DNA from: Mustelus asterias
Lineage: Eukaryota
Direction of reading: 5' to 3'
Assembly: GCF_964213995.1 (NCBI RefSeq)
Contig: NW_027590629.1
Location: forward strand, 1-64,000
Length of the DNA: 64,000 nucleotides
The position numbers and the translations under genes are program-made. Numbering within the stretch: position 1 is the first letter of the stretch; every line of letters starts with the position of its first letter. Positions 6,644-60,882 of this stretch are shown piece after piece. The notes under the pieces were generated by a model. That model saw nothing but the letters and a program-made list of their open reading frames with translations. It was not told where the DNA came from and did not search any database.

Positions 6644-7692
6644 ATGGAAGGAACAAGCACCGTTCACAGCGGGGAGAAACCGTACACGTGCTCTCTGTGT
6701 ATGGACGAGGCTTCAGCCAATCATCTGACCTGTTAAAACACAAATGCAGTCAATCCAGGAAGAAACCATGGAAATGCAGGGATTGTGGGAAGGGATTCAA
6801 ATCCCCGTCTGGCCTGGAATGCCATTGGCTCAGTCACACTGGGGAGAGACCGTTCACCTGCTTCGAATGTGGGAAGGGATTCACTCGTCAATCCTACCTT
6901 CTGATACATCAGCGACTTCACACTGGGGAAAGGCCGTTCACCTGTTCTGTGTGTGGGAAGGGATTCATTCAGTCATCCACCCTGTTGAATCACCAGCGAG
7001 TTCACACTGAGGAGAGACCATTTAAATGCTCAGACTGTGGGAAGTGTTACAAATGTTCTGGGGAACTGATGCGCCATCAACGTGTTCACAGCAATGAGAG
7101 GCCATTCACCTGTTCCTTGTGTGGGAAAGGATTTACTCAGCAATACAAACTGCAGACACACCAGCGAGTTCACACTGATGAGAGACCTTTTACATGTACA
7201 GACTGTGGAAAGCGCTTTAAAAGTTCCCAGGACTTGATGCAGCATCAACCTGTTCACACTGATAAGAGACCGTTCAGATGCTCTCACTGTGGGTCTGCAT
7301 TCAAGCGATCGTCTCACCTGACTGTGCACCAGCAAATTCACACTGGGGAGAGGCTGTTCACCTGCCCTGAGTGTGGCAAGGGATTTACTCAGTCATCCGT
7401 CCTTCTGACACACCAGTGTGTTCAAACTGGGGGGAGACCATTCATCTGCTCTGAGTGTGGGAAGGGTTTCCCTTCCTCATCCAAACTTCTGATGCACCAG
7501 CACGTTCACACTGGGGAGAGACCGTTCACCTGCTCTGTGTGTGGGAAGGGATTCACTCAGTCATCCAGCCTGCTGACACACCAGCGAGTTCACACTGGGG
7601 AGAGGCCATTCACATGTGCTGAATGTGGGAAGGGATTTGCTTATTTTTCTGTACTGATGAGACACCAACAAGCTGACAAGCAATTACAATGA
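6644..7692 (+). pseudogene. Tandem C2H2 zinc-finger gene (9 intact plus about 3 degenerate fingers), frameshifted near the start
   Basis: CxxC-x12-HxxxH repeats with TGERPF linkers at 6688-7692. The ATG at 6644 ([17 protein letters not shown]) is thrown out of frame by an extra CT at ~6691-6696 and stops at 6734-6736. AATAAA at ~7800. Confidence 0.75.
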
Positions 7693-15304: not shown

Positions 15305-15385
15305 TGGAAACTGAAAATAAATAACATATCAAAATCTGACAGATTCATCCAATTTATTGTAACTGAATATCAGTGGCTTTTGAAC

Positions 15386-16291
15386 GTGGAAGGAAAAAGC
15401 ACCGTTCACGGTGGAGGGAACCATACATGTGTTTTGTGTGTGGACGAGGCCTCAACCGATCATCTGGCCTGTCAAAACATAAGTGCAGTCACTCTATGGA
15501 AAAAGCGCAGCAACGTGTGGACTGTGAGAAGGAATTCAGTTACCCATCCCAGCTGGAAACTCATCGGCGCAGTCACATGGGGAGACGCCATTCACCTGCA
15601 CTGAGTGTGGAATGGGATTCACTCAGTCATCCAACCTGGTGTTACACCAGCAAGTTCACACTGGGGAGAGACTGTTCACCTATTCCGAGTGTGGAAAGGG
15701 ATTCACTCGGTCATCCCACCTACGTACTCATCAGCATGTTCACACTGGGGAGAAGCCAATCACCTGCTCTGAGTGTGGGAAGGAATTCACTCAATTATCC
15801 CACCTGCTGAGACACCAATGGCTTCACACGGGAAGAGGCCGTTCACCTGCTCTCAGTGTGGGAAGAGATTCACTCAGTCATCCAGCCTGGTGTCACACCA
15901 GCGCATTCACACTGGGGAGAGGCCGTTCATCTGCTCTCAGTGTGGGAAGGGATTCACTCAATCATCTGACCTCCTGACACATCAACGGGTTCACACTGAC
16001 GAAAGACCTTTTAAATGCTCAGACTGCGGGAAGTGCTATAAAAGTTCTAGTGAACTGATGTCCCATCAACGTGTTCACACTGATGAGAGACCATTCGGGT
16101 GCTCTCACTGTGGGGCTGGGTTCAGGCGATCATTCACCTGCTCAGAGTGTGGGAAGGGATGCACTCGGTCATCCAACCCGCTGAGACACCAGCGAGTTCA
16201 CACTGGGGAAAGACCATTCATCTGCTCCGAGTGTGGAAAGGGATTTTCTCAGTCATTCCACCTGCTTAGACACCAAAGAATTCACGAGTAA
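15386..16291 (+). pseudogene. C2H2 zinc-finger pseudogene, paralogue of 6644-7692
   Basis: Start ATG>GTG (GTGGAAGGAAAAAGCACCGTTCAC); fingers spread over three frames; the exon 5' part (~11840-11920) is separated from it by a 3.4-kb CR1 nest. Confidence 0.85.
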
Positions 16292-31340: not shown

Positions 31341-31468
31341 CTTCACCAGAGTGACAGCCGTGCTGTAGAAAATGCTTAGGAAGAACAGGGCTATGAATGT
31401 GGAAGCGGTGGTCCTGATGTTGCTGTTGTCATCCTTACTGTTTTCAATCCAGATGCTGTCTGTAGAAT
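31341..31468 (-). CDS. IGHM: IgM TM1 exon
   Basis: ag|(D)STDSIWIENSKDDNSNIRTTASTFIALFFLSIFYSTAVTLVK|gtgag; CART-type TF..LF.LS..YS motif; in frame with the cryptic CH4 donor at 37600. Confidence 0.92.
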
Positions 31469-32391: not shown

Positions 32392-35130
32392 ATATAGAAC
32401 ATAGAACAGTACAGCACAGAACAGGCCCTTCGGCACACGATGTTGTGCCGAGCTTTATCTGAAACGAAGATCAAGCTATCCCACTCCCTATCATCCTGGT
32501 GTGCTCCATGTGCCTATCCAATAACCGATTAAATGTTCCTAAAGTGTCTGACTCCACTATCACTGCAGGCAGTCCATTCTACACCCCAACCACTCTCTGA
32601 GTAAAGAACCTACCTCTGATATCCTTCCTGTATCTCCCACCACGAACCCTATAGTTATGCCCCCTTGTAATAGCTCCATCCACCCAAGGAAGTAGTCTTT
32701 GAACGTTCACTCTATCTATCCCCTTCATCATTTTATAAACCTCTATTAAGTCTCCCCTCAGCCTCCTCCACTCCAGCGAGAACAGCCCTGGCTCCCTCAA
32801 CCGGTCCTCATAAGACCTACCCTCCAAACCAGGCAGCATCCTGGTAAATCTCCTCTGCACTCTTTCCAGTGCTTCCACATCCTTCTTATAGTGAGGTGAC
32901 CAGAACTGCACACAATATTCCAAATGTGGTCTCACCAAGGTCCTGTACAGTTGCAGCATAACCCCACGGCTCTTAAACTCCAACCCCCTGTTAATAAAAG
33001 CTAACATACTATAGGCCTTCTTCACAGCTCTATCCACTTGAGTGGCAACCTTTAGAAATCTGTGGATATGAACCCCAAGATCTCTCTGTTCCTCCACAGT
33101 CTTCAGAACCCTACCTTTGACCCTGTAATCCACATTTAAATTAGTCCTACCAAAATGAATCACCTCACATTTATCAGGGTTAAACTCCATTTGCAATTTT
33201 TCAGCCCAGCTTTGCATCCTATCTATGTCTCTTTGCAGCCTACAACAGCCCTCCACCTCATCCACTACTCCACCAATCTTGGTGTCATCTGCAAATTTAC
33301 TGATCCACCCTTCAGCCCCCTCCTCTAAGTCATTAATAAAAATCACAAAGAGCAGAGGACCAAACACTGATCCCTGCGGCACTCCGCTAGCAACCTGCCT
33401 CCAATCCGAAAATTTTCCATCCACCACCACCCTCTGTCTTCGATCAGACAGCCAGTTACCTATCCAATCGGCCAACTTTCCCTCTATCCCACACCTCCTC
33501 ACCTTCATCATAAGCCGACCATGGGGGACCTTATCAAACGCCTTACTAAAATCCATGTATATGACATCAACTGCCCTACCTTCATCAACACACTTAGTTA
33601 CCTCCTCAAAAAATTCTATCAAATTTGTGAGGCACGACTTGCCCTTCACGAATCCGTGCTGACTATCCCGGATTAATCCACATCTTTCTAAATGGTCGTA
33701 AATCCCATCTCTAAGGACCTTTTCCATCAATTTACCAACCACCGAAGTAAGACTAACCGGTCTATAATTACCAGGGTCATTTCTATTCCCTTTCTTAAAC
33801 AGAGGAACAACATTCGCCATTCTCCAGTCCTCTGGCACCATCCCCGTGGACAGCGAGGACCCAAAGATCAAAGCCAACGGCTCTGCAATCTCATCCCTTG
33901 CCTCCCAAAGAATCCTAGGATACATTTCATCAGGCCCAGGGGACTTATCGACCTTCAGTTTATTCAAAACTGTCAGGACATCCTCCCTCCGAACATCTAT
34001 TTCCTCCAGCCTATTAGCCTGTAACACCTTCTCTTCCTCAAAAACATGGCCCCTCTCCTTGGTGAACACTGAAGAAAAGTATTCATTCATCACCTCGCCT
34101 ATCTTTACTGACTCCATACACAAGTTCCCACTACTGTCCTTGACTGGCCCTAACCTCACCCTGGTCATCCTTTTATTCCTCACATAAGAGTAAAAAGCCT
34201 TCGGGTTTTCCTTGATCCGACCCGCCAAGGACTTCTCGTGTCCCCTCCTCGCTCTCCTAAGCCCCTTTTTCAGCTCATTCCTTGCTAACTCAATCGAGCC
34301 ATCTGAACCTTGTTTTCTCATACCTACATAAGCTTCCCTCTTCCTTTTCATAAGACATTCCACCTCTTTCATGAACCATGGTTCCCTCACTCGGTCATTT
34401 CCTCCCAGCCTGACAGGGACATACCTATCAAGGAAATCCAGTATTTGTTCCTTGAAAAAGTTCCACTTTTCATTAGTTCCTTTCTCTGACAGTTTCTGTT
34501 CCCAACTTATGCCCCCTAATTCTTGCCGAATCGCATCATAATGACCTCTCCCCCAATTGTAAACCTTGCCCTGCCGTACGGCCCTATCCCTGTCCATTGC
34601 AATAACAAAATACACCGAATTGTGGTCACTATCTCCAAAGTGCTCTCCCACAACCAAATCTAACACTTGGCCCAGTTCATTTCCCAGTACCAAATCCAAT
34701 GTGGCCTCACCTCTTGTCGGCCTATCCACATATTGTGTCAGGAAACCCTCCTGCAGACACTGCACAAAAACTGCCCCATCCGAACTATTTGACCTACAAA
34801 GGTTCCAATCAGTATTTGGAAAGTTAAAGTCCCCCATGACAACTACCCTGTGACCCCCACACATATCCATAATTTGCTTAGCAATTTCTTCCTCCACATC
34901 TCTATTACTATTTCGGGGCCTATAGTAAACTCCTAACAACGTGACCGCTCCTTTCCTATTTCTAACCTCAGCCCATATTACCTCAGTGTGCAGATCCCCC
35001 TCGAAGTGCCTTTCCGCAGCCGTTAAACTATCTTTGATTAACAATGCCACTCCTCCACCTCTTTTACCAGCTTCCCTACACTTAGTGAAACATCTGTACC
35101 CCGGAACGTCCATCAACCATTCCTGTCCTT
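32392..35130 (-). mobile_element. Young CR1 with an 845-aa open ORF2 (partial APE plus RT) in the CH4-TM1 intron
   Basis: GGGVALLIK, GVYYRP, MGDFNF, SDH, FADD; (AGAACAT)n tail. Confidence 0.95.
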
Positions 35131-37537: not shown

Positions 37538-37920
37538 TCATTTACATGAATTAACGGTGTCCATCAGTGCAAGAGAAATGTTCACAAAACTGGGTTTACC
37601 GCTGGATTTGTCAACCGTTCTGTTGATGATCTTCAAGGGGATGGCTTCATGTCCCACCACACATGAGTAAGAAGCGCCACTGGACCACTCCTCCGCTGCA
37701 ATGGTTAACAGGCTGTACATGAAGAAGGAGCCATTGCCGTTCTCCGCTACCACCTCGGTGTTCTGATAGTTCCCAGGCTTGTCATTGATGGTCCACTTGA
37801 CGAAGATCTCTCGGGGGGAGAAACCTTTCACTAAGCAGCTGAGGGAGACGAATCTGTGAGAGGAGATTTCTTCTGCCGAGGGCAGGAGGACAGAGACGGA
37901 AGGTTCCTGTGGGTTTTTAA
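37538..37920 (-). CDS. IGHM: IgM CH4 plus secretory tail
   Basis: cag|(V)[55 protein letters not shown]|[19 protein letters not shown]; NIS sequon and penultimate Cys; AATAAA at ~37498-37512. Confidence 0.97.
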
Positions 37921-38830: not shown

Positions 38831-39130
38831 CTTCTTCCTTGTGGATCGATAGTCTTAAAGGAATCGGCTGATCCTCATTTCTCGCCACACATTCGAACAC
38901 GTCCCCACTCTGCCAGGCTTGTGTCGAGATGTTTAATTTGCTGACCACACTGCCTGAATGTTGGTCGACAATCTCTGATTTTAAATGCTTCTTTCCTTGG
39001 CTCCAGGACATGTTGAATCCAGCGTGAGCTTTAGAAATGACACATGTTAAGGTCACGGTCGCCTCCAGTAGGAATTGTTCCATGGGCGGAGGCAGGAGAG
39101 TGATCCTGGAATTGGTGCATGAGGGATAAT
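38831..39130 (-). CDS. IGHM: IgM CH3 exon
   Basis: 300 bp, phase 1/1; [41 protein letters not shown]. Confidence 0.95.
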
Positions 39131-39459: not shown

Positions 39460-42400
39460 TAGAATATATGAACGAGGAGCAGCAGTCGGCCGTCTGGCCC
39501 CTCGAGCTTACTCCGCCATTCAATCAGATCAGGCTCATCTTTTCGTGCACTCAGATCCACTCACCCGCCCGCTCATCATAACCCTTAATTCATTTACTGT
39601 TCAAAAAGCTATCTATCTTTGCCTTTGATATATTCAGCAAAGTCGCCTCAACTGCTTAACTGGGCAGGGAATTCCATAGATTCACAACCCTTTGGATGAA
39701 GAAGTTCTTCCTCAACTCAACCCGATATCTGTCCCCCCCCCCCCCCCCCGCCCCCCCGCCTCCACCTTATTTTGAGGCTGTGCCCCCGAGTTCTAGTTTC
39801 ACCCACCAGTGGAAACCACCTCCCTGCTGCTTATCTTATCTACTCTCTTCATAATCTTACATGTTTCTAAAAGATCCCCCCTCATTCTTCTGAATTACAA
39901 TGAGTATAGTCCCAGTCTACACAGTTTCTCCTCAGAAGACAACACTCTCAATTCCGGAATCAACCCAGTGAATCCTCTTGGCACCCCCTGCAATGCCAGT
40001 TTATCCTTTCTCAAGTAAGGATACTAACGTTGTACACAATGCTATAGCTGTTGCCTCACTTTATAAAGCTGAACTTTATACAGCTGCACCATAACCTCCC
40101 TGTTTCTAAATTCCATCCCTCCAGCCATAAAGGACAAAATTCAATTTGCCTTCTTAATTACCTGCTGCACCTGTCAACCAATGTTTTGCGATTCATGCAC
40201 AAGGACACCCTGATCCGACTGCACAGCCAAATGCAGCAATTTTTAGCCCTTCAATAATAGTCAATTTTGCTGTTAGAACATAGAAGATAGAAAAGCTACA
40301 GCACAAACAGGCCCTTCGGTTCACAAGTTGCGCCAAACATGTCCCTACCTCTTCGGCTTACCTATAAACATCTATCTTACTAACTTCCATGAACTTATCC
40401 AAAAGTCTCTTAAAAGACCCTATCGAATCCACCTCCACCACCACTACCGGCAGCCGATTCCACGCACCCACCATCCTCTGAGTGAAAAACTTACCCCTAA
40501 CATCTCCTCTGTACCTACTCCCCAGCACCCAAAACCTGTGACCTCTTGTGGCAACCATTTCAGTCCTGGGTAAAAACCTCTGAGAATCCACTCTATCAAT
40601 ACCTCTCAACATCTTATACACCTCTATCAGGTCACCTCTCATCCTTCGCTTCTCCAAGGAGAAAAGACCTAGCTCTCTCAAACTATCCTCATAAGGCATG
40701 CCACCTAATCCGATAACATCCTTGTAAATCTCCTCTGCACGCTTTCTATGGCTTCCGCAACCTTCCTGTAATGAGGCGACCAGAACTGTACACAGTACTC
40801 CAGGTGGGGTCTGACCAGGGTCCTATATAGCTGCAGCATTATCTCCCGATTTCTAAACTCATTTCCTCTATTGATGAAGGCCAGTATTCCTTACGCATTT
40901 TTAACCAAAGCTTCTACCTGTGACGCTGCTTTGAGCGTCCTGTGAACCCGGAGCCCAAGATCCTTCTGATCTTCCACACTGCCAAGCATCTTACCCTTAA
41001 TATTATATTCTTTCATCCTATTTGACCTGCCAAAATGCACCACCACACACTGATCTGGGTTGAAGTCCATCTGCCACTTCTCTGCCCAGTCTTGCATTTT
41101 ATCGATGTCTCGTTGGAACTGCTGACATCCCTCTACACTATCCACAACACCACCAAAACTTTGCGTCATCAGTAAACTTGCCAACCCATCCTTCCACTTC
41201 CTCATCCAGGTCATTTATAAAAATCACAAAGAGCAAGGGTCCCAGAACAGATCCCTGGGGCACTCCACTGGTGACCGACCTCCATGCTGAAAAAGACCCA
41301 TCTACAACCACTCTTTGCCTTCTGTGGGCAAGCCAGTTCTGAATCTGCAAGGCAATGTCCCCTTGTATCCCATGCCCCTTCACTTTCTCAATAAGCCTTG
41401 AATGGGGCACCTTATCAAACGCCTTGCTGAAATCCACATAAACTACATCTACCTCTCTTCCCACGTCTATGTGTCTAGTTACATCTTCGAAAAATTCAAT
41501 TAGGCTCGTAAGGCATGATCTGCCTTGGACAAAGCCGTGCTGGCTATTTCTGATCATACTATTCCTCTCCAGATGTTCATAAATCCTGCCTCTCAGGATC
41601 TTCTCCATCAACTTACCAACCACTGAGGTTAGACTCACTGGTCTATAATTTCCTGGGCTATCTCTTCTCCCTTTCTAGAATAACGGAACCACATCCGCAA
41701 TCCTCCAATCCTCCGGAACCTCTCCCATCTCCATTGATGACGGAAAGATCATCGCCAGAGGCTCAGCAATCTCTTCCCTCACCTCCCACAGTAACCTGTG
41801 GTACATCCCATCCGGTCCTGGCGATCTATCTAACTTGATGCTTTACAAAAGCTCCAACACATCCTCTTTCCTAATATCCATGTGCTCAATCATCTCAGCC
41901 CACTGCAAGTCTGCACTGCGACTACCAAGATCCTTTTCCACTGTGAATGCTGAAGTAAAGTATTCATTGAGTACCTCTGCTATTTCTATCGGTTCTGTAC
42001 AGACTTTCCCACCATCACATTTGATAGGTCCTACTCCTCCACATCTTATCTTCTTGCTCTTAACATACTTATAGAATGCCTTGGGGTTTTCCTTTATCCT
42101 GTCTGCCAAGGCCTTCTCATGACCCCTTTTGGCTCTTCTAATTTCCCTCTTATGTTCCTTCCTACTGGTTGTATACTCTTCTATATTTCTAACATTACCC
42201 AGCTCCCTGAACCTTTTGTAGGCTTTTCTTTTCTTCTTGACTAAATTCGTTACAGCTTTCGTGCACCATGGTTCCTGTAACCTACCATAACTCCCCTGTC
42301 TCATTGGAACGTTGCTGTGCAGAGTTCCAGACACATTTTCCTTGGAAATTTGCCACATTTCTTCTGTACATTTCCCTGAGAAAACCTCCTTCCAATTTAT

Positions 42401-42840
42401 GCCTCTAATTTCCTGCCTAATAGCCTCATAATTGCCCTTACTCCAAATAAACACTTTCCTAGCTTGACCGATCCTAGCTCTCTCCAATGCTAATGTAAAG
42501 GAGATAGATTTATGATCACTATCCCCAAAATGCTCTCCCACTGAGAGATCTGACACCTGCCCAGGTTCATTCCCTAATACCAAATCAAGTACAGCCTCTC
42601 CTTTTGTAGGCTTATCCACATACTGTGTCAGGAAGTTTATTCCTACCAACATTGTACTCCATCTGCCAGACCCTTGCCCACTCACTGAAACTATCTATAT
42701 CCCTTTGCAGACTTTCAGTGTCCTCTGCACACTTTGCTCCACCACTCATCTTAATGTCATCTGCGAACTTGTGCACACCACACTTGGTCCCCAACTCCAA
42801 ATCATCTTTGTGAATTGTAAACCATTGCGGTCCCAACACT
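39460..42840 (-). mobile_element. Older CR1 host (39460-40273 and 42636-42840) carrying a nested CR1 (40274-42635) of the same family as 12738-14952
   Basis: Two 3' tails; host RT resumes after 42636 (GPQWFTI..KFADD); nested copy is frameshifted. Confidence 0.85.
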
Positions 42841-43147: not shown

Positions 43148-43462
43148 CCAGAGATCCGCTGATGTTCTGACTCTGTGTAAGCCCTTGATGAGTGACCTGG
43201 CAGGTATAGATCGCTTTGCTAAACCATTCCCCAGTGGAGATTGTCAGCCGACTGCTCGCCGAGAAGTTCCTGTTCACTTCCCAGACGGGGGAGGTGACAA
43301 TTCCTGAATCCATGGGTTGTCCATTCTTCAGCCACTTCACCGTCATTGACTTTGGCTGGAAATCGATGATTGAACAGACGATGGTTGCAAATTTGCTGCT
43401 TGTGATTTCTTCACTGGAACTCACGGTAAGGATAACGGTTGGAGGTATGTCATCTTTAGAAC
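43148..43462 (-). CDS. IGHM: IgM CH2 exon
   Basis: 315 bp, phase 1/1; [49 protein letters not shown]. Confidence 0.95.
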
Positions 43463-43670: not shown

Positions 43671-43970
43671 ATGGCATTTCAATCCTCTTGACTGAGCCGC
43701 TGTGTCGAACCTCACAGTTGATTTTGCTGCATTCTCCCTCTGGCTCGGTGATGGTTAACTGGCTGCTCAGGGTATAGGTTTCCTTCGTGTTTCTCACTGA
43801 TGGGTAAGTCTTAAACCCAGTGGTGATCGGCTGCCCATTTTTCTTCCAGGTTAGACTGGTGATTTCTGCGGAGTAGTCCATTGCCAAACAGCCGTAGGTG
43901 ACAGAGCCGTTCGTGTTGTGTTGCTGACAGGAGGAGACCAGGCTGTATAGAATGGGTGGAGATGGTGTCG
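43671..43970 (-). CDS. IGHM: IgM CH1 exon
   Basis: 300 bp, phase 1/1; [48 protein letters not shown]. Confidence 0.95.
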
Positions 43971-53149: not shown

Positions 53150-55160
53150 AAACGTAGTTTGTTTATTTATTTAGCCAGAAAAAGGGTAACTGCTCAGTAT
53201 CACTGCGTTTAAACAATACAGAAACAATTGAGAAACTCTAAACAATTTCACAAATTTTTAAATGAGATTCGTGACTAATTATTTCGGTATCCAATCACAA
53301 ATTACTTGGAAGGAATATGTGGTTGCGCCTGCACAGAAAGAATCTAATAATCGGATATATAAATTGCGAAATAGCAGTGTGTTGTTCTCCAAAACCCATA
53401 TTCAAGTGATTGCGAACTTAATCAGGGAGATAACGATTAATGCAAAGTATCTTGTTACACTGAACACTGCTGTGGAAACAGTATGTTATCATTGAAATAG
53501 TTTCTAGAATTATCACAAAATATTTCCAGCCTAGAAACTTTTCTGGCCATGTTAATTGTGTGCAAAGCCCAGCAGAACTATTAAATCCAAATAATGCGAA
53601 ATACTAATGTGAAATAATCTTTGGTGAATATGGAGTTATATTACCGATTAATAATTGCTTGATTTATATTAATTTTACTATCAAACTTGTTAATGAGAAG
53701 TTTGTGATTGCAGCAACGACTTAGTGTCCGATTGAACATTGTATGTCATGATTTACTTTAATTTGTAAACGTTAGTTAAAATTTCTAAAAATGCTGTGAT
53801 ATCTTTATTTTATTTCTTCCACAACCTGCTTGTTTTCTCCCTTGAAGAATTCTCAAACTCATAGATTGTTTGCATTCAACCAGAAAACGTGTAACCGCTC
53901 AGTGCCACCGAGTTTAAACAATACAGAAACAATGCCGAAACACCAAACCATTTCACATATTTTGAACATTCATAGTGACGCAACCACAGAACCTCCTCAA
54001 AAGAAAACACACCAAAACGCATCAATGAGGGAATGAATCTATTTCACGGAGACGCAGCTCAATTTCCATTCAACAAAATCAAAAATATCATTGCAATAAA
54101 ATCTCAATATCGAATCCAGCAAACCAGCTCGTCACCAAATGTATGAATTACTAAACTAAACAGATATCTGGAATAAGAGCAATAACATTTGTCCAAAAAA
54201 TTAATATTGAAACTTTACCACATTCTATTCATATTGGATCATATTTCAAACAGATTTCAAACATATTTAAACATTTGGATGGTAGAAGCTGCCGCCATCA
54301 GATGCCACTGAGATTAAACATTTCAGGTAACGCAAATTGTGGAAGCAGTGGCAAACTATGTTCTGGACAAATGGCGTAAACCGTGATTTAGTTTAACCTG
54401 CTCATCTGCTTAAATCACTTACGATTTTAAAGAATACAAATGCAATAAAACCTGGCTAATTTCTGTCAGCAGTCATCTTAGAATCTTAGAAATCTTAGAA
54501 ACCCTACAGCACAGAAAGAGGCCATTCGGCCCATCGAGTCTGCACCGACCACAATCCCACCCAGGCCCTATCCCCATATCCTTACATATTTACCCACTAA
54601 TCCCTCTAACCTACACATCCCAGGACGCTAAGGGCAATTTTAGCATGGCCAATCAACCTAACCCGCACATCTTTGGACAGTCATGTGACAAGTAGTTTAA
54701 AACTCGCAGAATGTTTGTATTCAATCACAAAGCGTGTAGCAACTCAGTGTCACCGAGTGTAAACAATGCAGAATTGTCAAACCATTTCACAAATTTTACT
54801 TGTTCAAAGTCACCCAGACAGACAACCTCCTCACCAAAAAAACGCACCACTGAGGGACTGAACCCCGGTTCATGCAGAAGCAGTTCAATTCTACAAACAG
54901 TTTCAACAGAATCAAATTTCACATTGGCAGAAAATCTCAATTTAAAATCCAGCCAATCCGCCCATCACCAAAGTAACTAATAATTAAAATGAGCACAACA
55001 ATGACATAACAAAACCAGACTGTGATTTAGTGGAACATGTTCAAAACATTAAAGCAGAAACATTAGCACGTTTTGTAGATATTGGGTTAGATTTCAAATA
55101 CTTGTGCAGTAGATGGTGCAACTCCCAGCCAGAAGATCACCGAGATTAAACATTGCAGAA
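53150..55160. repeat. Diverged tandem units in the J-CH1 intron (~53150, ~53855, ~54700)
   Basis: Shared CTCAGT.(T/C)CAC.G.GT.TAAACAAT.CAGAA..AAAC.ATTTCACA.ATTTT; the last two also share ..CACCAAA..AGATTTCAAA..GAGATTAAACATT. Confidence 0.7.
54478..54678 (-). mobile_element. SINE family 1 3' half
   Basis: Near-identical to 27960-28143. Confidence 0.85.
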
Positions 55161-55458
55161 ACACCGAACTGTTTAACAAAAGGTAGGCATGCAAAGTAAC
55201 CCAGCCACACAATGTCCTCAGCAGATAAACACAAAATCACAACAACAAGAGACCGAATCACTCAGCATCACCGTTTGTCAATTAACAGTAGAATTCTCTC
55301 ATCCCCATTTTATGCAGAATCATATGAAACATTGTAAAGATTTTCAGCACAGAATCCACCAAACCACATTTCAATGAACGAATAAATTAATAAAATCGAT
55401 AAAAAAATAAAACAAAAGCTCAAGTAAAACAGGAACTAAATAATTATCTGATTCTTAC

Positions 55459-55506
55459 CTGCAGTCACCGTCACCATGGTCCCTTGTCCCCAGTCGTCAA
55501 AGTAGT
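55459..55506 (-). CDS. IGHJ: JH segment (YFDDWGQGTMVTVTA)
   Basis: WGxG motif; donor G|gtaag. Confidence 0.97.
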
Positions 55507-55545
55507 CACAGTGTCACATTCCCTTGGCTGGGTCATACAATAACC
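55507..55545 (-). other. 23-RSS 5' of JH
   Basis: GGTTATTGT - 23 nt - CACTGTG immediately before J. Confidence 0.95.
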
Positions 55546-55876
55546 GTCCCTGCAAAAAAAAATAGACAGAAAAGCCACCATTATTTTAAATATTCACAAA
55601 CCAGAGGAAAAGCAAAGTCAATTAATTTCCATGAAATTATTATTGTATTTGTGGAGACCGTTCGCTCTTCATAATTGACCCGAAAGTTTTATATATCACA
55701 AAGCATCAAATGGACATTTTATTGAAAACGCCAGCTGATAATTGAATAGTTTTCATAAATTTTCCATCCTAATTCTCGCTACTTGTGCAGAGTTGGACAT
55801 AAATAATACAGCACTGCAAATATTTTTGGATTGTAAAACAGAGCACTGACCCAGCCTGGGCCAATTAGTGCTGAGG

Positions 55877-55904
55877 GATTTTTGTATTGACAGTAACTGC
55901 TGTG
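55877..55904 (-). other. 12-RSS 3' of the joined V-D block
   Basis: CACAGCA - GTTACTGTCAAT (12 nt) - ACAAAAATC. Confidence 0.92.
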
Positions 55905-56234
55905 CGGTCCCAGGTATACTGCTGTATACGTCCAATGCACAGTAATAGATGGCGGTGTCTTCAGTCTTCAGGTTCGTCATGTCCAAAACGAAGATATTGT
56001 TTGAAGTGTCTTTGGACGCAGTAAATCGATTCTTAATTGCTGGGGCGTAGTTGTTGCTTGATGAACTATAGTAGTAAACCAACCACTCCAGCCCCTGTCC
56101 GGGAACCTGTCGGACCCAGTGCATGTACGCGCTGCCAAGCTTGAAGCCGTTGGTTTTACAGGTCAGTCTCAGGGAGTATCCGGGATGCCCAGTCTCTGCC
56201 TCTGGCTGAGTCAACACAATCTCCGACTGGACAC
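55905..56234 (-). CDS. IGHV: VH exon fused to D-derived sequence (germline-joined VD/VDD)
   Basis: cag|[54 protein letters not shown], then a 12-RSS. Confidence 0.93.
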
Positions 56235-56374
56235 CTGTAAACACATATCAAAAACCCCGACGATTAATTCTGGTGAAATGATTGCTGACTCTGAGATGAT
56301 TGGTGACATTTCAGAGATAAACTAACGCTGAAACAGTGAGAGCGAGAGACTTGGACAATAAAAAAACTACTCAC

Positions 56375-56420
56375 CGGATAAGAAAGTCAGCAACAAACTG
56401 AGAGAAATCACCGAACTCAT
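56375..56420 (-). CDS. IGHV: VH leader exon (MSSVISLSLLLTFLS)
   Basis: 46 bp, hydrophobic, G|gtgag donor, phase matches the V exon. Confidence 0.92.
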
Positions 56421-56509
56421 CCTTCTGGTGATTTGGGGGAAATGGTTGTGTCAGGAACTCAGTGAACAAACCACCTCCCGGACTGTTGGATTCCGGTCCC
56501 AGTGAACGG

Positions 56510-56520
56510 CATTTAAATAC
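56510..56520 (-). promoter_or_regulatory. TATA-like box of the VH promoter
   Basis: GTATTTAAATG on the minus strand ~90 nt upstream of the leader ATG. Confidence 0.5.
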
Positions 56521-57090
56521 CCGGCAGAAGGGGGTGGCTTTCCAGGCGCCGCCTGTTGATTCCCTGCTGGAGGCGGCGACTGGATCCAGGTCCCACCTTC
56601 CACACCTCAACAGAATGGACTTCCAGATTGACAATAGGTTAATAGTGAAATTGGCATTTTATCTGTGTCGGGATATTTGTGCGGCTGAATATATTCATTG
56701 TATTGTCTCCATTATTTCTAATGGTGATATTGCAGCTCATCTCTTTATTTTAAAAAATAATTTCATTGCAAATATGCTGCTTTTATGACCACGCCCCTAA
56801 CAAGAACACAAATCTAAAAATGATGAAATAACATTTTCGGAAAATAAAGAGACCGTCAGTCTGTGTTGCAACAATTCCGGGTCTCTGTCACATTACAATA
56901 ATGAAACATAATTTATCGGAAGATTTGTTATCGATTTCTGTAACTAAATGTGGGGGATGAACAGAGTGATTCTATTTACAGTGTGGATTGCTATCACTGT
57001 AAAATTTGGGTTTGGAGATGAGAATAAAATCTCACCCAATACAATGTTTCTCCTTATATTTGTCAAACTGCCCCAATCTCGAAGACAGTT

Positions 57091-60000
57091 CTGACCACAA
57101 TTCGGTTACGTTCACCTTAGTGATGGAAAGGGATAGGCATGAACCTCGGGCCAGTGGTTTTAGCTGGGGGAAGGGTAATTATGAGGCTATTAGGAGAGAA
57201 TTAGGAAACATAGGTTGGACTAGGAGATTACAGGGACTGGGAACGTCCGACATGTGGAGTTTTTTCAAGGAGCAGCTACTGCGAGTCTGTGATAGGTATG
57301 TCCCTGTCAGGCAAGGAGGAATTGGTAGGGCTAGGGAACCGTGGTGCACCAAAAAAGTTTCTTTGTTGGTTAAAAAGAAAAAGGAGGCTTATGTTCGGAT
57401 GAGACGTGAGCACTCGGGTAGTGCACTAGAAAGCTTTAGATTGGCTAAGAGGGAGTTGAAGAGCGAGCTTAGAAGGGCTAAAAGGGGACATGAGAAGACT
57501 TTGGCGGATAGGGTTAAAGAGAATCCTAAGGCGTTCTATAGGTATGTCAAGAACAGAAGGTTGGTTAGGGCAAGTTTAGGGCCAGTTATAGATGGCAGAG
57601 GGAAGTTATGTGTGGAACCGGAGGAGATTGGTGAAGCATTGAACCAATATTTCTCTTCGGTGTTCACGCAAGGGGACATGAATATAGCTGAGGAGGACAC
57701 TGGGTTGCAAGGGAGTAGAATAGACAGTATTACAGTTGATAAGGAGGATGTGCAGGATATTCTGGAGGGTCTGAAAATAGATAAATCCCCTGGTCCGGAT
57801 GGGATTTATCCAAGGATTCTCTGGGAGGCAAGAGAAGTGATTGCAGAGCCTCTGGCTCTGATCTTCAGGTCGTCGTTGGCCTCTGGTATAGTACCAGAAG
57901 ATTGGAGGTTAGCGAATGTTGTCCCATTGTTTAAGAAGGGGAACAGAGACTTCCCCGGGAATTATAGACCGGTGAGTCTCACTTCTGTTGTCGGCAAGAT
58001 GTTGGAAAAAATTATAAGGGATAGGATTTATAGTTATTTGGAGAGTAATGAATTGATAGGTGATAGTCAGCATGGTTTTGTGGCAGGTAGGTCGTGCCTT
58101 ACTAACCTTATTGAGTTTTTTGAGAAAGTGACCAAGGAGGTGGATGGGGGCAAGGCAGTGGACGTGGTATATATGGATTTTAGTAAGGCGTTTGATAAGG
58201 TTCACCATAGAACATAGAACATAGAACATTACAGCGCAGAACAGGCCCTTCGGCCCACGATGTTGCACCGACCAGTTAAAAAAAAAAACTGTGACCCTCC
58301 AACCTAAACCAATTTCTTTTCGTCCATGAACCTATCTACGGATCTCTTAAACGCCCCCAAACTAGGCGCATTTACTACTGATGCTGGCAGGGCATTCCAA
58401 TCCCTCACCACCCTCTGGGTAAAGAACCTACCCCTGACATCGGTTCTATAACTACCCCCCCTCAATTTAAAGCCATGCCCCCTCGTGCTGGATTTCTCCA
58501 TCAGAGGAAAAAGGCTATCACTATCCACCCTATCTAAACCTCTAATCATCTTATATGTTTCAATAAGATCCCCTCTTAGCCGCCGCCTTTCCAGCTAAAA
58601 CAATCCCAAATCCCTCAGCCTCTCCTCATAGGATCTCCCCTCCATACCAGGCAACATCCTGGTAAACCTCCTCTGCACCCTCTCCAAAGCCTCCACATCC
58701 TTCCTGTAATGTGGGGACCAGAACTGCACACAGTACTCCAAGTGCGGCCGCACCAGAGTTGTGTACAGTTGCAACATAACGCTACGACTCCTAAATTCAA
58801 TCCCCCTACCAATAAACGCCAAGACACCATATGCCTTCTTAACAACCATATCTACTTGATTCCCAACTTTCAGGGATCTATGCACACATACACCTAGATC
58901 CCTCTGCTCCTCCACACTATTCAAAGTCCTCCCGTTAGCCCTATACTCAACACATCTGTTATTCCTACCAAAGTGAATTACCTCACACTTCTCCGCATTA
59001 AACTCCATCCGCCACCTCTCGGCCCAACTTTGCAACCTGTCTAAGTCTTCCTGCAGACTACGACACCCTTCCTCACTGTCTACCACACCACCGACTTTGG
59101 TGTCATCAGCAAATTTGCTAATCCACCCAACTATACCCTCATCCAGATCATTAATAAATATTACAAACAGCAGTGGCCCCAAAACAGATCCCTGAGGTAC
59201 ACCACTTGTAACCGCACTCCATGATGAATATTTACTATCAACCACCACCCTCTGTTTCCTATCCGCTAGCCAATTCCTGATCCAATTTCCTAGATCACCC
59301 CCAATCCCATACATCTGCATTTTCTGCAGAAGCCTACCATGGTGAACCTTATCAAACGCCTTACTAAAATCCATATATACCACGTCCACTGCCTTGCCCC
59401 CATCCACCTCCTTGGTCACTTTCTCAAAAAACTCAATAAGGTTAGTAAGGCACGACCTACCTGCCACAAAACCATGCTGACTATCACCTATCAATTCATT
59501 ACTCTCCAAATAACTATAAATCCTATCCCTTATAATTTTTTCCAACATCTTGCCGACAACAGAAGTGAGACTCACCGGTCTATAATTCCCGGGGAAGTCT
59601 CTGTTCCCCTTCTTAAACAATGGGACAACATTCGCTAACCTCCAATCTTCTGGTACTATACCAGAGGCCAACGACGACCTGAAGATCAGAGCCAGAGGCT
59701 CTGCAATCACTTCTCTTGCCTCCCAGAGAATCCTTGGATAAATCCCATCCATGGTAGGCTTCTGCAGAAAATGCAGATGTATGGGATTGGGGGTGATCTA
59801 GGAAATTGGATCAGGAATTGGCTAGCGGATAGGAAACAGAGGGTGGTGGTTGATAGTAAATATTCATCATGGAGTGCGGTTACAAGTGGTGTACCTCAGG
59901 GATCTGTTTTGGGGCCACTGCTGTTTGTAATATTTATTAATGATCTGGATGAGGGTATAGTTGGGTGGATTAGCAAATTTGCTGATGACACCAAAGTCGG

Positions 60001-60882
60001 TGGTGTGGTAGACAGTGAGGAAGGGTGTCGTAGTCTGCAGGAAGACTTAGACAGGTTGCAAAGTTGGGCCGAGAGGTGGCGGATGGAGTTTAATGCGGAG
60101 AAGTGTGAGGTAATTCACTTTGGTAGGAATAACAGTTGTGTTGAGTATAGGGCTAACGGGAGGACTTTGAATAGTGTGGAGGAGCAGAGGGATCTAGGTG
60201 TATGTGTGCATAGATCCCTGAAAGTTGGGAATCAAGTAGATAAGGTTGTTAAGAAGGCATATGGTGTCTTGGCGTTTATTGGTAGGGGGATTGAATTTAG
60301 GAGTCGTAGCGTTATGTTGCAACTGTACACAACTCTGGTGCGGCCGCACTTGGAGTACTGTGTGCAGTTCTGGTCCCCACATTACAGGAAGGATGTGGAG
60401 GCTTTGGAGAGGGTGCAGAGGAGGTTTACCAGGATGTTGCCTGGTATGGAGGGGAGATCCTATGAGGAGAGGCTGAGGGATTTGGGATTGTTTTCGCTGG
60501 AAAGGCGGCGGCTAAGAGGGGATCTTATTGAAACATATAAGATGATTAGAGGTTTAGATAGGGTGGATAGTGATAGCCTTTGTCCTCTGATGGAGAAATC
60601 CAGCACGAGGGGGCATGGCTTTAAATTGAGGGGGGGTAGTTATAGAACCGATGTCAGGGGTAGGTTCTTTACCCAGAGGGTGGTGAGGGATTGGAATGCC
60701 CTGCCAGCATCAGTAGTAAATGCGCCTAGTTTGGGGGCGTTTAAGAGATCCGTAGATAGGTTCATGGACGAAAAGAAATTGGTTTAGGTTGGAGGGTCAC
60801 AGTTTTTTTTTAACTGGTCGGTGCAACATCGTGGGCCGAAGGGCCTGTTCTGCGCTGTAATGTTCTATGTTCTATGTTCTAT
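57091..60882 (+). mobile_element. Young 5'-truncated CR1 (57091-58208 and 59749-60882) split by an inverted copy
   Basis: Open RT frames on both sides: ..DKVH | HGRLLQK..; (TTCTATG)n tail. Confidence 0.95.
58209..59750 (-). mobile_element. Inverted near-identical copy of the 3' 1.54 kb of the host CR1
   Basis: Reverse complement of ~57795-58208 plus 59749-60882 with only a few substitutions. Confidence 0.95.

Follow-up and report, generated by a model that had tools for sequence, protein, structure and literature searches.

Shark IgM heavy-chain genes have the layout V(23)-(12)D1(23)-(12)D2(12)-(23)J, the recombination signal sequences (RSSs) being given as 12-RSS or 23-RSS. Reviews report that some of these clusters are joined in the germline, either partly (VD-J and VD-DJ) or fully (VDJ). 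Partly joined VD-J IgM clusters were described in Heterodontus francisci by Kokubu et al. 1988 (EMBO J), as cited in reviews; V and D are fused there in inherited DNA, J remains separate with its own RSS and Cmu lies downstream. In the nurse shark, the germline-joined IgM heavy chain IgM1gj, with its predetermined CDR3 (Rumfelt et al. 2001), is expressed in neonates and is presented as a model for a possible innate-like role at that stage. The nurse shark NS4 light-chain genes coexist in joined and split forms, and a RAG-like recombination in germ cells was argued to be the origin of joined shark genes (Lee et al. 2000, PMC2193156), a view repeated in reviews; the joints of NS4 exhibit trimming and possible P bases. 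Finally, somatic VDD-J intermediates are common in the nurse shark thymus (Malecek et al. 2008, PMC2435157), and for this reason it matters whether a joined sequence found in an assembly represents germline DNA or a lymphocyte clone.

In this study, positions 1-64,000 of contig NW_027590629.1 of the Mustelus asterias assembly GCF_964213995.1 were analyzed (this whole stretch of 64,000 nt is hereafter referred to as the window). A complete cartilaginous-fish IgM heavy-chain minicluster is located on the minus strand, from ~56.5 to 31.3 kb, and comprises one VH, one JH, Cmu1-4 and TM1, all in a single orientation and within a few tens of kb (Table 1). Its variable portion (56420-55459, minus strand) consists of: (i) a leader, (ii) an intact VH exon, (iii) a 31-nt in-frame extension of this exon, (iv) a 12-RSS, (v) a 331-bp intersegment, (vi) a 23-RSS and (vii) JH. 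V thus runs in frame into D-like sequence, uninterrupted by an RSS, and no free D is present in the cluster. It is very likely that the extension is D sequence joined to VH in the germline, its 3' part being D2 and its middle part probably a remnant of D1. The present gene adds one example to a class, the partly joined (VD-J) IgM clusters, that has been textbook matter since 1988; this class, covered by reviews, had been regarded as known in the original prediction as well.

Table 1. Features of the Mustelus asterias IgM minicluster (positions within the window).
Feature	Positions	Strand	Remarks
TATA-like box TATTTAAA	56512..56519	-	99 nt 5' of ATG
Leader exon, MSSVISLSLLLTFLS + base 1 of split Gly codon	56375..56420	-	ATG at 56420, donor gtgagt
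VH exon, leader end to FR3 to Cys-Ala	55936..56234	-	Pfam V-set, E=3.2e-18
Junction TTGGACGTATACAGCAGTATACCTGGGACCG, 31 nt in frame, 10 residues + 1 nt	55905..55935	-	fused to V
12-RSS: CACAGCA, 12 nt, ACAAAAATC	55877..55904	-	assigned to D2 (3' signal) from its sequence; 3 mismatches to consensus
D2-J intersegment, 331 bp	55546..55876	-	exact contigs across it in X1 and X2
23-RSS of JH: GGTTATTGT, 23 nt, CACTGTG	55507..55545	-	1 mismatch to consensus
JH, 48 nt, encodes YFDDWGQGTMVTVTA	55459..55506	-	WGQGT motif, donor gtaaga
Cmu1 exon	43671..43970	-	open, ag acceptor, gt donor
Cmu2 exon	43148..43462	-	open, proper splice sites
Cmu3 exon	38831..39130	-	open, proper splice sites
Cmu4 exon, secretory tail + stop	37538..37906	-	open
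TM1 exon, contains TTASTFIALFFLSIFYSTAVTLVK	31341..31459	-	donor gtgaga

The likeness to the partly joined clusters of Heterodontus francisci is close: as in that shark, V and D appear fused in inherited DNA, J is separate and retains its RSS, and Cmu is located downstream (Kokubu et al. 1988). The Heterodontus accounts also have partly joined clusters coexisting with unjoined and fully joined ones, and short contig ends of unjoined sister clusters were found here among the sequencing reads. Unlike the clusters of Heterodontus, for which a length of 18-20 kb is given (Hinds-Frey 1993), the M. asterias cluster spans ~25 kb and contains LINE insertions. The region upstream of the gene (56368-56652) is common to many paralogous contigs assembled from reads of the same organism. 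There is no perfect VH octamer (ATGCAAAT) near V, the only two perfect copies in the window being distant (35366 and 36608), and octamers with a single mismatch lie upstream of V at -237 and -353. The leader intron ends with the acceptor ag at 56236-56235, so that the V exon begins at 56234.

All seven of the coding exons examined are open and have good splice sites, and the Cmu exons encode C1-set domains (Pfam). Within Cmu4, an internal G/GTAAA at ~37600 could serve as the splice site to the TM exon, judged by its sequence. The J-C intron measures ~11.5 kb and includes low-complexity repeats: between 44600 and 50400 these are long and strand-biased, with a strong GC skew and open reading frames (ORFs) of S/L/P or H/T/S repeats. 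Just 3' of JH, the same intron contains a 94-nt direct repeat (54069-54162 and 54902-54995, 72% alike, 833 nt apart), accompanied by further short repeats with the same 833-nt spacing. LINE reverse-transcriptase ORFs on the gene strand occupy parts of the Cmu2-Cmu3 intron (40358-42839) and of the Cmu4-TM1 intron (32579-35116), the latter being an open frame of 845 aa. Another LINE reverse-transcriptase sequence lies just 5' of the V promoter (57797-60811) and includes two pairs of inverted repeats with 100% complementarity, one of 1063 nt (58280-59342/59749-60811) and one of 412 nt (57797-58208/59339-59750). From its layout, this region reads as a plus-strand element broken by an inverted partial self-copy; the inverted repeats are either very recent or a fold-back artefact of the assembly. 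On the 3' side of the IgM cluster, plus-strand C2H2 zinc-finger arrays are found among LINE copies at 6688-7692 and 15373-16291 (one ORF of 334 aa and a set of overlapping ORFs).

The VH exon contains the conserved Cys, Trp and YYC motifs. A database search with the V exon returned 24 candidates, all of which (24/24) passed E<=0.001, and identity to seven shark VH proteins ranged from 63 to 83%. The best matches were a partial model of Scyliorhinus torazame (84%), a sequence of Chiloscyllium punctatum (81%) and Heterodontus HV01 (79-80%), and nothing above 84% identity was found in this protein database search; the V is thus ~80% identical to sequences of carpet sharks, catsharks and horn sharks.

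The recombination signals of the cluster are those expected from the original prediction. At the end of V, which closes with TGTGCA (Cys-Ala, 55941-55936, minus strand), no CACAGTG-23 signal follows directly; in its place there are the 31 nt in frame, then the 12-RSS and, where a distance of about 330 bp had been given, 331 bp before the 23-RSS and JH. Of the 6 matches to a 23-RSS in the window, a number reached in 0/100 shuffles, that of JH was the best; for the 12-RSS at <=3 mismatches, the window contained 3 matches where 1.04 were expected. When both strands of 55400-57000 were scanned, no RSS was found besides these two. The absence of any other signal in the cluster means that there is no free D, as had been proposed. 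A heptamer-only scan, in which <=1 mismatch was allowed (the heptamer CACAGCA of the 12-RSS, with 2 mismatches, falls beneath this limit), listed the JH heptamer, a CACAGTA inside the 3' end of V (55938, plus strand) and seven matches with one mismatch, none of which has an RSS partner. The combination of a V-set exon, an in-frame extension, a typed pair of RSSs, a WGQGT-bearing J and Cmu exons is far above what chance would produce. Reinsertion of an excision product was also considered and rejected: back-to-back heptamers gave one match in the window (2 mismatches, 17920), which was equalled in 29/100 shuffles and is attributed to chance. A single codon base is left over at the end of the junction, and the first two bases of JH complete that codon; a flush join of junction to JH is therefore in frame.

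The composition of the junction was assessed with the aid of sister clusters, i.e. contigs from public runs of the same organism matched to 55000-56700 at 90% likeness (32 of 561 matches listed). Among these, short contig ends present a D2 lying free between heptamers and a V followed by its own signal. A contig of the sample coded X2 follows the present gene from the 12-RSS to 55905, and then contains a 13-nt coding piece and CACAGTG at its short end; flanked by heptamers in this manner, the 13-nt piece reads as a D2 that is still free in a sister cluster. It is matched in register at 9/13 positions by the final 13 nt of the junction (55917-55905), compared with <=5/13 in 24 other registers. 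On account of this in-register match, the 3' end of the junction, together with the 12-RSS and the intersegment, is assigned by sequence to D2 and its 3' flank, and the D2-like character previously ascribed to this end is borne out. The intersegment is also matched by paralogous contigs that are 90-95% alike.

At the other end, four contigs of sample X4 (among the matches listed) share V as far as Cys-Ala; beyond it they have 6 nt followed by CACAGCG, which resembles a heptamer (consensus agreement 0.73). The original prediction had asked whether sister V segments normally bear this extension and a 12-RSS. Such an explanation is ruled out, as the sister V ends pass into a heptamer after Cys-Ala and these 6 nt. 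The first 6 nt of the junction, TTGGAC, share their last three bases with the sister V end, and may be derived from V (which would then reach 55930) or may be N/P bases. Shark D1 is TACAGCAG-like, and the middle 12 nt of the junction, GTATACAGCAGT, are probably the remnant of a D1, here a putative one. The 6-nt palindrome GTATAC occurs twice in the junction (55914-55929), 10 nt apart, at the putative starts of D1 and D2, and ACGT occurs once; the GTATAC pair may stem from the opening of hairpins, as P additions, or from a 5' end common to D1 and D2.

Another history, in which V was joined straight to D2, the 12-18 nt between them are N/P bases or later mutations and the cluster is V-D2-J, is unlikely, yet agrees with several features of the locus. 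Such a join conforms to the 12/23 rule, since the V 23-RSS would pair with the 5' 12-RSS of D2, and D1 would have been lost with the excised DNA; opened hairpins could have left the two GTATAC palindromes and ACGT as P-type additions; and a junction from S. torazame (the protein model P0002, described below) is shorter and has the same (I/V)PG motif without a YSS-like insert. However, at least 12 non-templated bases would be long for a single junction, and the piece between V and D2 is an open reading frame.

A joined sequence of this type could also have originated in a lymphocyte, as a clonal VDD-J intermediate captured by the assembly, and the samples behind the reads are coded, with no tissue stated, which leaves room for such a source. 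Clonal junctions are rare, yet the depth at the junction equals that of its flanks: in X1, a 369-nt contig (record 4, 55597-55965), which covers part of the intersegment, the RSS, the whole junction and the adjoining end of V with 0 differences and 0 gaps, has a depth of 44.9, against 46.4 and 43.8 for exact flanking contigs in the V exon (56085-56241) and the leader intron (56212-56366), respectively. The identical junction recurs in X2, which the same study obtained from a second sample, in a contig of 388 nt (record 13, 55578-55965, 0 differences) with a depth of 4.84, beside a J-side contig with a depth of 5.41. These exact junction contigs extend 30 nt into V (under a bridging rule of 31 letters), the end of FR3 being shared with paralogues, and X1 may come from the animal used for the assembly, as X2 may from that same animal. 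Neither an unjoined version of the locus nor any joint was reported among the X1, X2 and X4 matches listed. In X4, depth was zero across 55570-55797, and in X6, a sample of another organism compared at 90% likeness, no piece across the junction was present among the 32 of 561 matches listed. Parity of depth and recurrence in a second sample argue for germline DNA over a somatic clone. The latter was rejected on these grounds and is considered highly improbable, and the inherited fusion that had been postulated is supported.

Given an inherited fusion, the history and the further use of the gene may be outlined as follows. We infer from the literature on joined shark genes that the fusion of V with D sequence goes back to RAG-type recombination in a germ cell, the product of which was inherited. 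This join would have removed the V 23-RSS, the signals of D1 and the 5' signal of D2, leaving the 3' 12-RSS of D2 facing the 23-RSS of JH over 331 bp. One further 12/23 deletion by RAG, from D2 to J, would then complete the V region in a lymphocyte, and ~10 CDR3 residues after Cys would be inherited. Variation could still arise at the D2-J junction (by trimming and N/P bases), through hypermutation and through the light chain. It had been proposed that only the D2-J junction can diversify; this stands insofar as it is the sole remaining join, but not with respect to hypermutation and light-chain pairing, which would vary the receptor as well. With these three sources of diversity in place, the earlier description of the product as a near-fixed antibody is overstated.

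Of the nurse shark systems, the gene most resembles in structure the VDD-J intermediates of thymocytes and B cells (PMC2435157), in which V-D1-D2 is fused and the D2-J intersegment and JH are intact, with the reservation that D1 is putative here. Unlike those intermediates, which are clonal and lymphoid, the present junction has full single-copy depth and was found in two samples. IgM1gj, too, is an IgM heavy chain that is joined in the germline and has its CDR3 set in advance, but in the description by Rumfelt et al. 2001 its VDJ join is complete, no RAG step is required and Cmu2 is missing, whereas in M. asterias the D2-J join is pending and Cmu1-4 are all present. With NS4 (Lee et al. 2000, PMC2193156) the gene shares the proposed RAG-like origin in germ cells and the coexistence of joined and split forms. 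The NS4 joins, unlike this one, are complete light-chain VJ joins without D, and in the pairs treated in that paper joined and split genes are up to 99% identical, so that the joint can be dissected.

Similar architectures are also visible in public protein records. Three hypothetical-protein or V-region models, P0002 (scyTo_0022151, Scyliorhinus torazame), P0004 (chiPu_0018910, Chiloscyllium punctatum) and P0007 (Rhincodon typus), are apparent read-throughs of germline-joined genes, the last of them reading across a whole VDJ and on into the J intron. As in the M. asterias gene, P0002 and P0004 pass from YYC through a short D-like sequence into a translated 12-RSS, and P0002 shares with it the RSS-encoded peptide AQQLLSIQK. 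Because the same peptide is encoded, the spacer of the 12-RSS seems to be conserved between M. asterias and S. torazame. The two models differ from the present gene in V (76% identity for P0002 and 68% for P0004) and in their junctions, which are shorter or different. Orthology with either is not established, as the V identities are just 76% and 68%.

Whether such a gene is of use to the animal is a separate matter. It is quite possible, though somewhat short of an even chance, that the cluster is a germline-joined by-product without function, intact but hardly or never expressed or selected and awaiting decay. In the text of Lee et al. 2000 (PMC2193156), expression of the germline-joined heavy-chain genes of the horned shark is given as undetected and their significance is doubted; in M. 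asterias, none of the listed runs containing this stretch is recorded as RNA, no perfect octamer lies upstream of V, and LINEs have inserted into two introns. On the other hand, the seven open coding exons, two good RSSs and the in-frame flush join speak against decay, joined genes of the nurse shark are expressed in neonates, and a lack of RNA runs is no sign of silence. The opposite proposal, that the cluster is maintained as a semi-invariant, innate-like IgM heavy chain with a V-D-D join that has become fixed in this species and may occur in relatives too, is rather improbable.

Open-literature matches concerning joined shark IgH genes consisted of reviews, the work on the nurse shark and one linkage paper of 2025; a genome-wide catalogue of which IgH clusters are joined and which are split, drawn from a chromosome-level shark assembly, was not found among them. 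Such a catalogue could date germ-cell RAG events, test the joints for P and N bases and reveal which of the joined genes stay intact. If the M. asterias chain is indeed maintained, a stereotyped early-life CDR3 would be obtained after the lone D2-J step, as in IgM1gj and one step short of full joining, and RAG recombination in germ cells could then be measured, in rate and in selectivity, from this cluster together with other joined clusters of one assembly.
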